64,000 nt of DNA from Paragordius varius (Eukaryota; Animalia; Nematomorpha): positions 1,736,001 through 1,800,000 of the forward strand of contig OZ176054.1 in NCBI GenBank assembly GCA_964247055.1, written 5' to 3'. The position numbers were made by a program, and so were the translations under genes. Under the pieces are notes generated by a model that was not told the origin of the DNA, made no database searches, and was given only the letters and a program-made list of their open reading frames with translations. Positions 68-60,900 of this stretch are shown in pieces. Each line of letters starts with the position of its first letter. Position 1 is the stretch's first letter.

Positions 68-1309
68 ATACGATATGATGGTAGATTTCGAAACGCTAAA
101 TTTTCTTGATCCTGATTATTGGATTATTGCACCGACCAAGTTTAATGCTTATTACTGTGACGGTGTGTGTGACCCCTCTTCTTTTGGCTTACATCAGAAT
201 CCTACAAACCATGCAACTTTGCAAGGGATGGTTTACATTGATATCAAGAACGTTGCTTCAAGTAATTTATAAAATTCTTCATTTAGTTTAACTCAACAAC
301 AATTTTATAATCGTTAAGAGCATAATTATATGATTAAATAGTAACCGTTACTATTTGAAAATATATATGTTACATAAATATTTAAAATATACAATAGTTT
401 CTGAGCTGAAAGTAGTTCGAATTCCAATTCTCCCGTCATTTTTAACTAATTTTAATAAACAATGTTGCTAACGTCATATCAGAAAACCCAAAATATTATT
501 TGAAAAAAAGATTAATAGTATAAAATTATCATATAAAACGAGAATTTAATCTGGAAAACGGATTTTTCTTCAAAATGCAAAAGACAGAGATTTACAAATT
601 TATATCATTCATTTTTGAAATTAGCATGTGTTTCCTAATAAACCATAATGAAATAATTTTGAAACCAGCTGAATTATAAGGAAATTTTTTTAGCCAATAT
701 CATAGTAAAAATTTATTTCGTTGACAAAGTAAATGGTTTTACAAAAAAATTAGGATTGTTTATCCTTTTACACAAACAATATCTTTTAAATTAAACAAAT
801 AATAGTCTATTTTTATTCAGTGAAAAAATATTATTTAAATTTCAAAACATTTCAGTGCGGTATTTAAAAATTTTTTTTGTTGATTGCAATGGAATAAAAT
901 ATCTTATTTCACTATTTACTGATTAAAAACAATTGTTAAATAAAGAAATATATACTGAAGGCCAAAATATTCAATCTCTAAGATTTTAATCATTAATTTT
1001 ATTTATTACATAGATCAAATACCTAAAACTATGGACAATACAACAAACACATCTTCTTATGCGTCGTCCGTAAATTATGCAATTCCTTCAAATAAAAGTC
1101 ACCCAATTAATAATCCGGCGGATAAAATAAACGATTTGAAGTCCCAAAAATTGAAACCTGAAAATCTTTCAATACCATTAAAACCGCCCCTTCCATGTTG
1201 TGTTCCCAGCAAATTAGAACCTTTAACGGTTCTCTATTACGATCGGCAAAGAAATGTGGTCCTTAAAACTTTCCACGATATGATAGCTTCAAACTGTGGA
1301 TGTCAATAA
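68..1309 (+). CDS. TGF-beta superfamily ligand, BMP class (BMP3/ADMP-like); last two exons, 5' part lies upstream of the window
   Basis: Exons 68-261 and 1014-1309 join in frame (acceptor ctttag at 67, donor A|GTAATT at 262, acceptor tacatag at 1013). Translation has YDMMVDF..WIIAPTKFNAYYCDGVC..NPTNHATLQGMV..PCCVPSKLEPLTVLYYD..VVLKTFHDMIASNCGCQ*, the CxGxC, CC and CxC cystine-knot pattern. Subfamily call is by remembered resemblance only. Confidence 0.93.
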
Positions 1310-2071: not shown

Positions 2072-5000
2072 TCAAAGCACAATTTTTTCATCCAAACATT
2101 GGGAAATGGCCGTTGATAACTCTTTTAGGATTATGTCACTTAACATGACTTGAGAACAGTAAGTTTTTAGCGTACAAGTAGATTGTGTTACACTTAGGTT
2201 AAACAACACCAAGGATTCAGATTTTATAGTTTTTGCGCTAAATGACATATTAAAAGTGTTATTGTTGTTGTTAGAAATTTTTTCCTTTGATGTTGTTTCA
2301 ACAGCGGCGTTCGTATCGTAGTAAGAAGAGGGATCGATTTGTACAAGCAGAGATTCCGGGCAAAAATAGGCATTAAAATGTTTTAGTATGGTCCAATAAA
2401 GTTGTTTAACGCTTGGTGTGTTGGCAAATACGGTTTTAGCATCAAATTCCATGCCATGTTTCGGCGGCCTCAATAAATATGAATGAGATATATCACGTAA
2501 TTGTCCAATATCGGTAAACAAATCGTTAGACACTGAGAGAGGTATTGGTAATGTTTGGGTTGATTGATGCATCATACCAGTTAATTTTTCTAACATAAAT
2601 TATAAAATTAAAGATTACAAATCTCTCGATATATTTCTCAAAATTCTTAAGGCATTGACAGATAAATTAATATAATTTGATACGTTTATGACGTGGAATG
2701 TAAATTCTAATAAAAAATTAAATATAAAAAATTTTGATGAGTTTTCCATTATAAATATAAATATGGAAAATCGGATTTTAAATGCGATAAAAATTTATTA
2801 ATTATTTTTCGTTTTCAGCATAGTAAAAAATAAAATTATATAGGCAAAATCTAAAAACTGAAAAACAAATGTTTTTTTTAATAAGGACATAATATTTTAA
2901 AATACTTATTAATCTCAATGATTACACAATGGTAAAAGTTTATACATCCAAATCCTATAACTTTCAAACCAAAAACAATAAGTTATATTTAAAAATTGGG
3001 GGCTAAAAAAGATAAATAATTTTGTCTTTGTAAGAATTAAATTTTGTGCAATTGACATTTATAGCGATAAATTAAGTAATTACTCGATTCGGCATAAAAG
3101 TCTGATTGATTCATAATGATGGGTAGAATTTGTTCTCCTAGGGGTGCCTGTATCCTACATTCAGCTTTAACATTTTCATATATGGTATCTTGGCTGTTTT
3201 CACCCAGATTTTTTTTTCCAACTACGTCAGATTTTTTAGTCCTAAATTTTAGGTTAAAAGCGAATGGACAGACACTCTCCTTAAAATCTATTCCCATATT
3301 CGTATGAACACATTGACCCGGTAAGATTGATGCTATTATATAAATAATGTTTGTACATTTCAATAAATAAGAATTATTATAATAATTTATTGATTCTGGA
3401 TTAAAAATCTATAAATATAGACATACTTATTTGGTAAAATGGGTAACATGACATACCAATCGTTTCGGCCTAAAAAACAAAAATAAATGTAATGATATTG
3501 ACAACTTTATAAAAAAGATTTTTTAGAGATAAACACTGGAAAAAAATTAAATTTAAAGAAAAAAGGTAAAAATTAAAGAAATATTTATCCATGATAGTTT
3601 CCATGTAACCTAAATAATTACAATTGTCAAATTCTTTATTTTACAACTCAAAACAAATATGGGTCAAACATAAAAGCACTAGGTTTTTAAAAATGTGTGG
3701 TTGATTTTTACATTAGTGTTAAAAAACAAATATTTATTTACCTTATCAAATACTAATCCTTCAATGATAGAGTTTGAACCATCATCACCTTGTTTGAGAT
3801 TATTGGTGAATTTTAATTCCACATTCAACATATGAGAGTTTGCCATATGAACTTTTCGACTAAACTTGAATGCGATTGACAAGGGTGAAGTTTTTGTGGA
3901 AAAACTCAGTTCTTGCCCTCCGCCAGTAGATGAATTATTTAGAGATTTAAAAAATTGGATTGTATCCAAAGGAGTATAGTCAGTTTTGATGTAAAATGGT
4001 CGTAAACATTTCTGTATATGTATAAAAAGATTTATTTTTAGTTGTTCCGTTATAATTTGTATGGTTATATGGCATATTATGTAAATATATTAGTAATCGA
4101 AAATTTTACTATACATATTTTTGCATATTAAAAAAATACCATGAAACTGTATATACTATTATTTAGAGAACTATATGTTTAGGTTAATTAAAATGCAGAT
4201 AATCAAACCAATATTTTAGCTAGTCAAACGTAAAAATACGTTATTAAAAAAATACGTCCTATAACAGAACACATATTTGTAAATAATTTACCAAAATACA
4301 TTGTTTCAAGCAGAAAAACTATTATCATATATTTAAAATTTTCTAATTTAAAAGATTCGAAATGAAATAACTTGGTAGCTGTTTTGGCTAGTTTTTCTAT
4401 CACTTTGTTTATCTATATTTTCAGTTTTTAATGGGGTTAGTAGGGGAGATGTTGAAGATATATTAAAAGCATTACTACTTTGGTTTGATAATGAATTCTC
4501 AAGATTTGTGGTGTAATCGTTAATGATATTACCAGTTCCAAACCCATTCGAAATGTCCAAATCAAGTAAAAGGGCATCAATATTTGACATTGTAGGCTAC
4601 ATTACACAAAAAAAACCCCAAAAAATTATATAGGTTCGAAAGTTTAAATTTAAGTGATATAGGATTATGCTAAATATATATATATATATATATATATATG
4701 ATTTTTTAAGAAAAGTTATTAATATATATTTAAATAACTAAGTGATTAAAACAATTCCAAATGTTTGAATTACTTTGGTGGTGGATGAGTCATTTCCTTT
4801 TTCTTGCTTATTTTCAAGTTTCTCACTAGGTTCTATGATATATTTATAAATATATATATATAATACCTCACATTTAAAAATATAGATGTAGGCAAAGTTA
4901 TAATATAAGTAACATTTTACACCCAAAATAATCAATTAATCACATTCATATTTCATAATAAAGTCTTTTTTATAGCACACAACAAATTTTGTTAAAAAAT

Positions 5001-28488: not shown

Positions 28489-28669
28489 CAGTATGCACGT
28501 TAATGTTGGACGATTATCAATACAGTAGTGTATGGGTTAAAACAACAAAATGATCAAATTAAACAACTTTTCCCCTTTCTTGCAGCAACATTTTTGTGGA
28601 TGCAATTTGTTTTAAAACACACGCTACTGTAGTATTACCAAACTGGTCAACATTAATGTGAAAATACTG
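28489..28669. mobile_element. Tc1/mariner-like foldback MITE, TA TSD, in the likely 3' UTR of the prohormone gene
   Basis: TA|CAGTATGCACGTTAATGTTGG..TACAGTAGTGT versus ACGCTACTGTA..CAACATTAATGTGAAAATACTG|TA; ~60-bp imperfect TIRs. Confidence 0.75.
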
Positions 28670-28714: not shown

Positions 28715-29526
28715 TTAAAAAATAGGATATAGTAAACGGCGTTTGTTGAAGCGTGCCGTTCCACCTATCCTATCGATTCCAAGCCCTGGTTGTTCGATAG
28801 GATCTAATCGACCTGGTCTCTCCAACAAAACATCATCCAGCCCAATCAGGTAACGCAAATTTTCAGGACGTAATCCTAATTGATTTTCATACATATTTCT
28901 CCCATTGTTTCTAATCTCTTCTTTCTCAGCTGTTTTTGCAATCAATTATAATTTTTTTAACATTTATACTGACTGCATTTAACGTGTATTATTTATATTT
29001 AACAAACTTTAGAAGCTTAAAAGCCATTAATGTTATAGCTTTGGGGCTAGTTTTTACAAAGGTTATTGTAAAAAATATTTTTACTAAATTTACGTAAACT
29101 AAAAATTACCATAACAATTATGTTGTCTACACATGACTCGTTTGGCAACTAAGGATTCCCCTAAGCTTTCAACTTGTCTTTTTGGCCTAATAGCACTTTT
29201 CTGAAGAATTTCTAAGATCAGAAATAAATTATTATTATAATATTATTTCACTTCACTTCCTTATATGATGCTAAAAAAGTGTAAAGAAAAAGATATAAAT
29301 TAGCTGGTAACAACCTTAAACCAAATTATAAATGATGTTCAATTTTTTACCTTTTTTTATTAGAAATAAAAACCAACATACCTCTGTAAGAGTGTTTCGG
29401 AGGAATAGCTGATATAGTGGGTATGAAATAGGAAAATCCCAATAAACATAATAATAAGATGGTGTAACAATTTTCATAACATTGATATATCAAACGGGAA
29501 TTCATTCCAACCTTCAGTGGGTGCAT
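28715..29526 (-). CDS. Secreted neuropeptide/prohormone-like precursor, 3 coding exons, 153 aa (146 from second ATG at 29505)
   Basis: Exons 29526-29382, 29211-29110, 28929-28715, joined by two phase-1 GT-AG introns. Protein: MHPLKVGMNSRLIYQCYENCYTILLLCLLGFSYFIPTISA-IPPKHSYREILQKSAIRP-KR-QVESLGESLVA-KR-VMCRQHNCYAEKEEIRNNGRNMYENQLGLRPENLRYLIGLDDVLLERPGRLDPIEQPGLGIDRIGGTARFN-KRR-LLYPIF*. Hydrophobic signal-like stretch, three dibasic sites, GC raised above flanks. Confidence 0.8.
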
Positions 29527-38060: not shown

Positions 38061-38511
38061 TTAAAAGGCTAATTTTAAATACGGTTCAAATATTGGCACA
38101 GATCTTTATACATTTATTAATAATATCTACGTTAAATATATATGTATTTAATTCTCGATATTTGAGAATTCAAATATTGTACGCTAATAGATTTTTTGAT
38201 ATGAGCATACGACACAAATGCGCTAATAATTTTTTAAATTCGATTCTTTAAAACCAAGATGATCAGGATATTTCCATCATGAATACTATATTTTTAGATA
38301 TCTAGATTTTGTGTAAACCATTGTTTTTATTTATATACATTAATAAAAATATAATAAGCCTATTAAATAATTTGATATTTTGTTGAAATAATTACATTTG
38401 AACATATTTATTATAATCAGATGTCTGCATTATTTATCATTAAATTACAACTGTTATTTTTGATAGAGGATCGGGCTTGTTTTTGGATTGGTTCAAGATG
38501 ATTATTTCCTT

Positions 38512-55101
<16,590 letters not shown>

Positions 55102-57300: not shown

Positions 57301-57948
57301 TTTGAAAATGGCATTTTTTATAAATATTTTCATTTTATATCAATATTTAGCTTATATTTAAAAGTTTTATCGCGTATCGGTATTTTTTCATTTATTTATG
57401 CTTCTAACCTAATAAAAATTATATAAATAAGCTAAAATATCTAAATAAAATTTAGCCATGGAAAAATTTGTATCAAACTACTTCGACAATTTTTATTTTA
57501 CAACATTTTTGCTAAATATCGTGTTTATTTGATTATAAGGTTAATTAAGTTTTCTATTTAATTAATATCACATTTAAATGAACAGAAAATAGGGTATATT
57601 CATTTTATACTTATGCACATGTGAGCTAAATTATTACCAATAGGTTTTACATCTGAATAAGTATTGAGTATTTTTAAGTAAATATTTTTTTATATTTTGG
57701 TTCATTAATGTTATTTAAATACAAACTTTTGCCATATGTCAATTTAATATTTTGAAATATTTAATTTTAAACTAGATTCTGGTATCTATCTACCCCAATT
57801 GTGAATCGAATGACTGAAATGACTGTGTTGTATTCAAGTGTTAAAAACTTGTGGTATATGTGCAAAAAAGTGTTTTATCACTAACATATGTTTTGACATA
57901 TGTGTAATTTTTATCGTTGGTTTTTATACAGCGGTTATTTTAAATTTG

Positions 57949-60900
57949 ATGGACAATAGTTTTAAATCTTTTAAGAAATCTAGTTGTTCAACCACTAAGA
58001 TAAAAGGGTTAAGACAAAAAGTCTCTAATTGCATGTGCAATGATATACAAATTGAAATTAAAGGACCTACAGATTTATGTAAAATTATACAAAATGTTTT
58101 GACTTTTTTATTCCCGCATGGTATCCAACTGAATATTACATCCACGATTCCGATACATAATGGATTAACTCAAATAAAAAACGAAGTATATACTACTCCT
58201 GTGCCTGAAAAATTTAATGAAATTCGGCCAATCTGCCCACTTAAATTATCAAATTATTTTAATTCGAATCTTAATTATCATGCATTATCTTATTTAAACA
58301 TTAAAACTGCAATAAAATCCGATCCAGGCAAATATTTAAGCCATGTATCTTCACTAACCTCTACAATATGTAATCCGTTTGAACCCAAGAGCCCTAATAT
58401 ATATTTAGAGGATACTATAAGTCCCAGTTTTGTGCATTCACTGCGGGCTAACCATAACGCAACAGAGAGTCCCATAAAATTTTCTCAACATAATAATGGT
58501 ATCATGAATAGTACTGAGGCCAATTTCATGGAAAATGTTGAACAACAAACTTCTTGTTGCGATGATAACACGCTCTTTACGATCGATGACCGTGCCCTCT
58601 TGTTTCCCGTCGACATTGAAAATTCACCATCATACTTTAAACAATTTTTTCATAATCATCAATCAAATAATCGGATAGTTTCTGCAGGTCACCATGATTC
58701 AGAACACGAGCGTTTAATTCAAACGACAATAGATCAATATTTTACCTCAAAGATTTATCTCCCTTCACCTTATCCTTCTAATCAAAGCAAAACTAGTAAT
58801 TCGTTGCCTAAAAAATCAAAAGGTTACCATATATTATTTTCCTTCTTTAAAAAATGCACATTAACTTATAGATATGAAAACCGAATTTTTCGAAAATACT
58901 CCATAATTTTTTCCCACGTTTGATTTTAGATTTGTTTTTGGTAAAAACACGTAACAAAGGTTGCCAAACCATCGTTTCTATCCCACCAGTCCAAGATATG
59001 ACTGGAGTGTTTGATACGCGTTTTCAAAACGGTTTCATGCATAACTGTAGTCTGTGTGCCGATCAGTTAGACCCATTAGCCTTATCACCTCCAGAATATC
59101 TGCAACGCTCTTTGTATAATAATAATACAACTTCTAAACGAAATAGATATTTACTATTTGGTGGACAACAATCTGCCTCATCTGAGAAAAGATTGCTTCA
59201 TTTATCTGCAAAAAAGATTGTGCCGACCTATGGGTAAACTATGAATTTTAGATAAGAAAAGTCTTTTTCATTATTTAAAGATCAATGTCATTAATATAAT
59301 GTGCTAATCTGAATTTTTTAATTAATTAAAATGCCAATCTTATGTGGTTTAATATGCATATATGGAAATAGCGTTTGCGTTTCATAGTAATGAAAGAAGC
59401 TTATAATAAATATTTATAGTAACGCTAATGCGGATAGCAGCGAAATCAGCCATGTTCAGGCATCTACCTCTCAGGCGTGTCAAACCCCTTCGTCGCCTAG
59501 CTCACTTTCATCGGCTCGGTTGTTGGAAATTATGCTTGAAGAACATCATATACCAGATTCATATTTTGCTTCCTTGCGGAAAAGAGATAAGGCATTACTC
59601 GGTCTGAACTTGATTATAATACTTAAATATATATATAAGCTATATAACGCTTTTAAAAATATATTTTGGCCCATAAAAATTTTCTTCATTATCCCAAAAA
59701 GATGTATCTTATTAACTACTAATTTTCAGTCTGACCTGTTATAAATATGGGAATGTTATCCATTATTAAAAAAAATTCATACATATAATATTATGTGATT
59801 TAAATTATTATAAAAATGGTGTAAAAATTAAATATTCTTTTTTAAACAAGGCGTTAACGTCATTCAATTTTGTTTAAAAACATATAATTCATATTTGTAG
59901 TTATGCTGATTGTTTGACCATAAAGGACTGCATTCATAGGTGGATAAATCGATTATGATTATTTAAACGAACGCATTAAACAAGCACACGAATAGATTTG
60001 TAAATACTGTTGACGAAAAACGTTCACATATCGTCTGCCTTATATATTAAATTAATCATTCATTCTGTTAATTTAAAAGGTTGTGACAATAACTAAACTG
60101 CCCTACAAAATGAATTTCAATGCACTATAGTTGGTCACTTGGCAACAAGTGTACGGAAAAAACAACAAAATGTTGATAATTAATACTTAAGATAGAAAAT
60201 ATTTAATATTTTGTTGTTTTTTCGTAAACTGCTGTGTTGCCAGTTGACCAACTATAATGTGAATAAGCCATCATTAAAATGCATACTGTATTTGATATTT
60301 TTCTTTCCTTCCATCCTCATAATCAATAGTTAAATTTTCACTAATTTATATCATTTTGGAAGGAGTTGAGTATATTATGCATAACGATTAGGTTCTTCAT
60401 CACCATTTCAATGTCCGCATTGTCACACTGTTTGTGACAATAATTCAAATTTTGCGTCTTCATCGCGCGTCAAAATGGTGGCCACGACCCCACGAAATAA
60501 AGTTTGTCAATTTTGTCGGCATTTGACGATACAAAGTCGTTCAAAACAGAGTGTGCGAAATAACAGTGATACACCGTTTTCTTTAACACCACTCTCCACA
60601 CAAAAAATAACATCTAGCCCCTTCCAACTACAGGAAGGAGAGGAAAAATCTATGATGAAATTATCTGGTCAAAAATTATTGTTGTTATCTACTTCACTTA
60701 GAAAAAAACAGCAACACCTGACAAATCTGGATTCATTAATACCAAGGACATCTGAATCAACCAATAATACAAATAATAATTTAAATAATAAAGCTCATAA
60801 TTTTTTGTTCCTTAACAACGAGGACGAATATTTCCCGAATTCTAGGGTAAGATTTGCTCGCCAAAGAACCATGTCGCCTCCACCAGAATTTAAACTTTCA

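Follow-up and report, generated by a model that had tools for sequence, protein, structure and literature searches.

Three open pieces on the minus strand of a hairworm contig join into a reading frame of 153 codons (462 nt including the stop codon), which has no internal stop in an in-script frame check. We propose that this frame belongs to a genuine, unannotated neuropeptide-type precursor gene, and that its identifiable product is a divergent, low-copy peptide of the orcokinin/NLP-14/15 type. Judged from the DNA sequence, we give this combined reading a probability of about 0.5. That the three-exon model is a real gene, whatever its product, seems to us likely. The frame, its processing sites, its coding signal and the match of one of its segments to a motif of published peptides are properties of the sequence itself. 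All positions given here refer to the window, that is, the whole stretch of 64,000 nucleotides that was analysed.

In the scheme that we favour, the gene would be expressed and its protein secreted, with removal of the signal peptide near ISA/IP (a slash marks a cut or a splice point). PC2-type convertases and a carboxypeptidase would then act at three dibasic sites, KR (residues 59-60), KR (72-73) and KRR (145-147). The recognisable product would be a 21-mer without amidation, LDPIEQPGLGIDRIGGTARFN, or an extended form in which it is still joined to the Cys-loop segment upstream. This 21-mer would belong, or would work as if it belonged, to the pedal-peptide/orcokinin family, together with the arthropod orcokinins and nematode NLP-14 and NLP-15, and may have a signalling role. 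The 11-mer QVESLGESLVA of the same precursor may be a degenerate second copy, and the Cys-loop segment may be a further peptide that is released alongside, or a spacer.

The preliminary description of this locus had proposed three exons joined in a 153-aa frame through phase-1 GT-AG introns. Reading of the strand and exon-by-exon translation reproduced this structure exactly, including both junctions and all of the peptide strings of the earlier model. The parts of the gene are as follows.

29382-29526, minus strand: exon 1; in-frame ATG codons at 29526 and 29505; codes for 48 residues and ends with the first base of a split codon; single copy
29212-29381, minus strand: intron 1; 170 nt, phase 1, GTATGT...TCTTAG, 21% GC
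29110-29211, minus strand: exon 2; 102 nt, with KR, QVESLGESLVA, KR and the VMCRQHNCY Cys loop; single copy
28930-29109, minus strand: intron 2; 180 nt, phase 1, GTAATT...AAACAG, 22% GC
28715-28929, minus strand: exon 3; stop codon (TAA) at 28715-28717

As was also noted previously, the default listing of open reading frames shows exon 3 alone, as a 76-aa frame; exon 1 lies within a 59-aa frame, and a start codon is missing from exon 2. Short, AT-rich peptide genes with three exons slip past annotation that is based on open reading frames. The splice junctions are 29382/29211 and 29110/28929, with the donors AG/GTATGT and TG/GTAATT and the acceptors TCTTAG/A and AAACAG/C, the second of which is not preceded by a pyrimidine tract. 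In the neighbouring CNNM gene, the introns of which were placed by mapping of a homologue, the donors are GTAAGT or GTAT... and the acceptors TTTAG or ATAG. Thus, the proposed donors and acceptors match the local splice habits. A TATAAA is located 9 nt 5' of the first ATG, which hints that the second in-frame ATG may be the true start; translation may begin at 29505 and not at 29526.

The whole 64-kb window is very AT-rich, with 22-34% GC per 2-kb block, and in such DNA the locus could be a chance chain of open frames, or it could be a decaying or unexpressed relic. We consider it quite unlikely that there is no functional gene, because several measurements follow the proposed structure. The GC content is 0.345, 0.363 and 0.400 in the three exons, compared with 0.212 and 0.222 in the introns and 0.21-0.27 in the flanks, and the steps in GC fall at the splice sites of the model. 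A codon log-likelihood was trained on the Pfam-supported exons within the same window (CNNM, BORA, TGF-beta and AP3B1-like). In each exon the proposed frame was the best of the six, at +2.8, +4.0 and +16.4 bits, and no other frame was positive, whereas the introns and flanks scored from -20 to -84. The scores of exons 1 and 2 are modest and would be compatible with a chance chain. However, exon 3 ranks by its score among the highest 3% of all open frames of at least 33 codons in the window, a null set that itself includes real exons.

Shuffled sequences bear on the same question from both sides. We kept exon 3 fixed and enumerated all ATG...GT/AG...GT completions in the upstream 800 nt, in the real sequence and in 400 dinucleotide shuffles of it. 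The real sequence has 94 three-exon completions, compared with a mean of 4.1 per shuffle (n = 400). Looser models are easily obtained by chance, since some three-exon completion was found in 43% of the shuffles and one with a hydrophobic N-terminus in 26%, but the complete pattern, in which the N-terminus is hydrophobic and two or more dibasic sites are present, appeared in only 9 of the 400 (about 2%). None of the sequencing runs recorded as RNA contains the locus, which is present only in DNA runs, and three small runs with the same species label, only presumed to be RNA, have no contig on it. This result, together with the failure to detect a homologue in the searches described below, is what a non-functional locus would give. 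The same applies to the lack of a nearby canonical poly(A) signal: no AATAAA was found within 470 nt after the stop codon, and the first one sits 474 nt beyond it. The DNA contigs of run X1 span the locus without differences, the read depth over the exons is even and at the single-copy level, and all three exons are single-copy in the assembly (110.6 Mb in 44 contigs). Taken at the level of sequence, the earlier proposal of a hidden three-exon prohormone gene therefore holds, on the strength of the GC steps, the codon scores and the 9 of 400 shuffles.

The predicted parts of the precursor, from the N-terminus onward, are listed below.

29407-29526, minus strand: predicted signal peptide, residues 1-40; hydrophobic core at about residues 22-40; predicted cut ISA/IP
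29144-29176, minus strand: predicted 11-mer QVESLGESLVA, flanked by two KR sites and containing VESLG
28808-28929, minus strand: part, in exon 3, of the long Cys-loop peptide; this peptide starts at 29137 in exon 2, ends ...LLERP-Gly-Arg and could be assigned to no family
28745-28807, minus strand: predicted 21-mer of the orcokinin/NLP-14/15 type, ending FN before KRR
28718-28744, minus strand: KRR site and C-terminal hexapeptide LLYPIF

All of the precursor features named in the preliminary description, namely a hydrophobic N-terminal segment ending ISA-IP, the KR, KR and KRR sites and a C-x4-C spacing, are present in the sequence. The mean Kyte-Doolittle hydropathy over 11 residues peaks at 2.3-2.4 at residues 21-35, and Ile and Ala occupy positions -3 and -1 of the putative signal peptide cut, for the prediction of which hydropathy and the -3/-1 rule were the sole criteria. 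All three dibasic sites are of a standard kind, and dibasic processing is the standard neuroendocrine route. In addition to these sites, the precursor has Cys at residues 76 and 81 (the whole 153-residue protein has five Cys) and Gly-Arg at 92-93 and 122-123. At the NNGR/N site the upstream Arg is at P5 and not at P4, P6 or P8. The RPGR/L site, which forms the N-terminal edge of the 21-mer, has an Arg at P4 and an aliphatic residue at P1'. The usual monobasic rules fit these two cuts poorly, and an aliphatic P1' is disfavoured. Cleavage at both Gly-Arg sites is doubtful, and thus the amidated products and the N-terminal boundary of the 21-mer are also doubtful. Accordingly, the Gly-Arg motifs on which amidation had been proposed do exist, but the amidated products themselves are questionable. 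If neither Gly-Arg site were cut, the orcokinin-like sequence would make up the last third of a peptide of 71 residues, with the CRQHNC loop at its start. AlphaFold gave no fold for exon 3 alone (mean pLDDT 50), and this low-confidence model would fit a flexible propeptide, although it is weak support.

The assignment of the 21-mer depends on a motif, [FL][DN]x[LI][DEAS]xxG[FL], that was written to cover published peptides only. Its sources were the crayfish orcokinin NFDEIDRSGFGFN (PMC5656890) and the NLP-14/15 peptides SLDSLEGDGFGFD, ALNALDGTGFGFD, AFDSLSGSGLTPFN and AFDSLAGSGFTGFD of Haemonchus contortus, which were detected by mass spectrometry (PMC8153747). This motif, chosen after the 21-mer had been seen, has a single match among the 127,996 residues of the six-frame translation of the window, and the match (LDPIEQPGL at 28807) is the start of the 21-mer. 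When the propeptide was shuffled with its composition kept, the motif appeared in 0.07% of the shuffles and a tighter form, with the following Gly, in 0.003%. In the whole genome, a DNA version of this tighter form, with position 4 widened, has seven matches, which is equal to the control count; only the 21-mer lies in a prohormone-like context. The other six were rejected, as one is in a C1QBP-like protein, one has an internal stop and four are in short non-coding frames. One of these four, a sequence strikingly like arthropod orcokinin, FNGIERTGFG (FNGIERTGFGIGF; L002:1970-2029, minus strand, corresponding to about 14,632,650 of G000:C2), was taken as a chance occurrence, because its frame has 20 codons, is opened by a stop codon and has neither processing sites nor recognisable neighbouring exons.

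The C-terminal side of the 21-mer also resembles the family. It ends ...ARFN-KRR and lacks a Gly ahead of the basic residues, which gives a non-amidated end of an aromatic residue plus Asn before a dibasic site. Furthermore, a pattern of hydrophobic-[DE]-x-hydrophobic-G, which was chosen post hoc, is found twice in the precursor, as VESLG in the 11-mer and as IDRIG in the 21-mer (P = 0.0015 in shuffles). The precursor therefore has one full family motif and two partial motifs, and tandem copies are absent. A search of the rest of the genome for a canonical multi-copy orcokinin gene, with the patterns FDEID, GFGF[DN]KR and GxGFGF, gave scattered matches at or below the control level and no cluster; by this criterion of pattern, the present locus may be the only pedal-peptide/orcokinin-type gene of the genome. 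The GC islands that surround the gene were also examined for alternative 3' exons like those of orcokinin A/B, and none turned up. The preliminary description had called the likeness to orcokinins loose. The likeness is present, but it appears to be more specific than that, given the uniqueness of the motif in the window and the FN end, and it rests on a motif of about 10 residues.

Among known peptides, those of nematode NLP-14/15 are the nearest in motif. Both have the core hydrophobic-D/N-x-L/I-acidic-x-x-G-F/L-G, both have a non-amidated end of an aromatic residue plus N or D before a dibasic site (...TPFN in Hc-NLP-15 and ...ARFN here), and both are carried by a precursor with KR-type sites, which in the hairworm is predicted to be secretory. 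In the comparison of LDPIEQPGLGID from the hairworm with SLDSLEGDGFGFD from Haemonchus, L, D, E, G, G and D are identical, and I/L, L/F and I/F are conservative replacements. However, the NLP-14/15 precursors have five to seven tandem copies and the hairworm precursor has a single clear copy. The hairworm peptide has Leu or Ile where NLP-14/15 has Phe, it is 21 residues long rather than 13-15, and it follows a Cys-loop segment. No sequence search connects the nematode precursors with that of the hairworm.

With arthropod orcokinin A (NFDEIDRSGFGFN), LDPIEQPGLGI aligns to FDEIDRSGFGF, with D, I, G and G identical and L/F, E/D, L/F and I/F similar; orcokinin A (...GFGFN) and the hairworm 21-mer both end in FN. 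The IDRIGG of the 21-mer matches four of the six positions of the orcokinin B hexapeptide DS(L/I)GGG (PMC9410093). In arthropods the A and B motifs are in alternatively spliced exons, whereas in the hairworm both types of motif are in one contiguous peptide. The molluscan pedal peptides and the echinoderm SMP-type peptides (PMC5656890) are non-amidated peptides cut from secretory precursors and belong to the same broad family, but their precursors carry far more copies, and in sequence they are further from the hairworm 21-mer than the nematode peptides are.

The C-x4-C segment upstream invites comparison with ring peptides, since vasopressin/oxytocin and calcitonin/CGRP peptides have the same six-residue ring spacing, and an Asn precedes the second Cys (CRQHNC) as in the vasopressin type. 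Membership in the vasopressin/oxytocin/nematocin group was rejected: the ring is followed by YAEKEE..., and there is neither a P-x-G-amide tail nor a Cys-rich neurophysin. A calcitonin/CGRP-like reading, in which the main product would be a 48-residue Cys-loop peptide with a disulfide ring at its N-terminus, then a helix, and a Pro-amide at its C-terminus, has in its favour the ring at residues 76-81, the ...RP-Gly-Arg end with an Arg at P4, and a helix that AlphaFold places, at low confidence, right after the ring. This reading is nevertheless highly improbable, and assignment to calcitonin/CGRP/DH31 was rejected, because a Pfam scan of exons 2 and 3 that includes the calcitonin/CGRP model gave no match for the Cys-loop peptide at E <= 10, no Thr precedes the second Cys, and amidation would need the doubtful RPGR/L cut.

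A broader alternative is that the gene encodes an orphan prohormone, in which the likeness of the motif to orcokinins arose by chance, and the products, such as the Cys-loop peptide, possibly Pro-amidated, are specific to the lineage or belong to an undescribed system. No homologue was detectable in any of the databases searched, the layout is non-repetitive, the Cys loop is missing from the known precursors of the orcokinin family, and the motif test was partly post hoc. However, the motif derived from the literature occurs only once in the window and seldom in shuffles, it lies inside a peptide that is bounded by processing sites and has the family-typical FN end, and the same precursor has a second and a third related motif; for these reasons we regard coincidence as possible but somewhat unlikely. 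The preliminary description had likewise pointed out that the non-repetitive layout and the Cys ring are unlike orcokinin precursors, and in this it was correct, but its suggestion of an unrecognised family and an undescribed signalling system is weakened by the match to the motif of published peptides. The layout is unusual, but it does not amount to a demonstrated new signalling system. A bolder form of the proposal makes the Cys-loop peptide of about 48 residues, possibly Pro-amidated, the main hormone in place of the orcokinin-like 21-mer; it would then found an undescribed ecdysozoan family of peptide hormones that has its own receptor. In an extreme version, the hairworm would secrete orcokinin-like peptides to act on its insect host. 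In our estimation, both versions are unlikely. The precursor might also be secreted and used outside the nervous system, in a gland or in the body wall, and at the extreme its product might be an orcokinin-like mimic released into an insect host. The source organism looks like a hairworm-type arthropod parasite, and IDRIGG and LDPIEQPGLG resemble the arthropod orcokinin B and A motifs, respectively. However, the nearest motif match is to nematode and not to insect peptides, and the dibasic sites point to neuroendocrine processing; such a use is very unlikely. Our preferred reading thus remains a neuropeptide-type precursor with a divergent orcokinin/NLP-14/15-type peptide.

The database searches, in which the exons were used separately, gave no relative of the precursor. 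A phmmer search with exon 3 against 1.84 billion protein representatives found no member of the PP/OK family. Its sole match was a bacterial TPR-repeat protein of 1254 aa (P0001), with an E value of 7.5e-4 that is summed over three matched stretches. The 34-residue repeats of this protein resemble residues 8-37 of exon 3 (28816-28906, minus strand) at about 40% identity over about 30 residues. Kinship with TPR proteins was rejected in view of the repeat-summed score, the single stretch of about 30 residues, the lack of a Pfam TPR match and the low confidence of the AlphaFold model, and we read the likeness as a probable chance resemblance between amphipathic helix-turn-helix structures. A word-index protein search with the exon-3 frame gave no candidate among proteins of 42-133 aa, a range that does not include full-length relatives of 153 aa. 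Pfam gave no match for any of the exons, each searched separately at E <= 10, the best scores in the ESM Atlas were 0.75-0.77, which is below the useful level, and no relative was found among JGI metagenome loci. As the product of the gene itself was missing from the results, it is absent from the predicted proteins of those collections. A query of about 70 residues needs roughly 50% identity to pass the threshold in a library of 1.84 billion; distant orthologues could therefore escape detection.

Horsehair worms are the sister group of the nematodes and are known for altering the behaviour of their hosts. Our literature search found no catalogue of neuropeptide precursors from Nematomorpha. 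If the present assignment is true, an orcokinin-type gene from a hairworm would help to connect the multi-copy NLP-14/15 genes of nematodes with the arthropod orcokinins. The 21-mer would also be a concrete peptide for receptor hunting, as the receptor of the PP/OK family was still unknown in 2017 (PMC5656890), and our literature search turned up no paper in which a receptor for orcokinin or pedal peptide is named.

Other coding features noted in the window are as follows.

1031-1309, plus strand: terminal exon of a TGF-beta-family ligand; Pfam TGF_beta, E 1.5e-12; ends ...CGCQ
2072-2596, minus strand: exon of an AP-3 beta C-terminal domain, a weak match; E 3e-5, under the Pfam cut-off
38488-47692, plus strand: CNNM (cyclin M/'unextended') metal-transporter gene; multi-exon, with introns of 200-2100 nt
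57838-58923, plus strand: exon of the BORA (aurora borealis) N-terminal domain; E 1.5e-9

The best database match of the CNNM exon was from Gordionus sp. (Nematomorpha), at 57% identity, with molluscs, tardigrades and chelicerates close behind. This would fit a hairworm-like ecdysozoan other than Gordionus, although as evidence of kinship it is weak. The first large exon of this gene (a 596-aa open reading frame) has a long, poorly conserved N-terminal part. On the 3' side of the precursor gene there is a dispersed repeat, about 150 nt long, at 28490-28650, that is, 65-225 nt past the stop codon and probably within the 3' UTR. At least 128 candidate copies of it were counted genome-wide; 40 of these were scored and are 70-97% identical, and the read depth of the DNA run spikes about 100-fold over it. 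This repeat may be a MITE- or SINE-like element.
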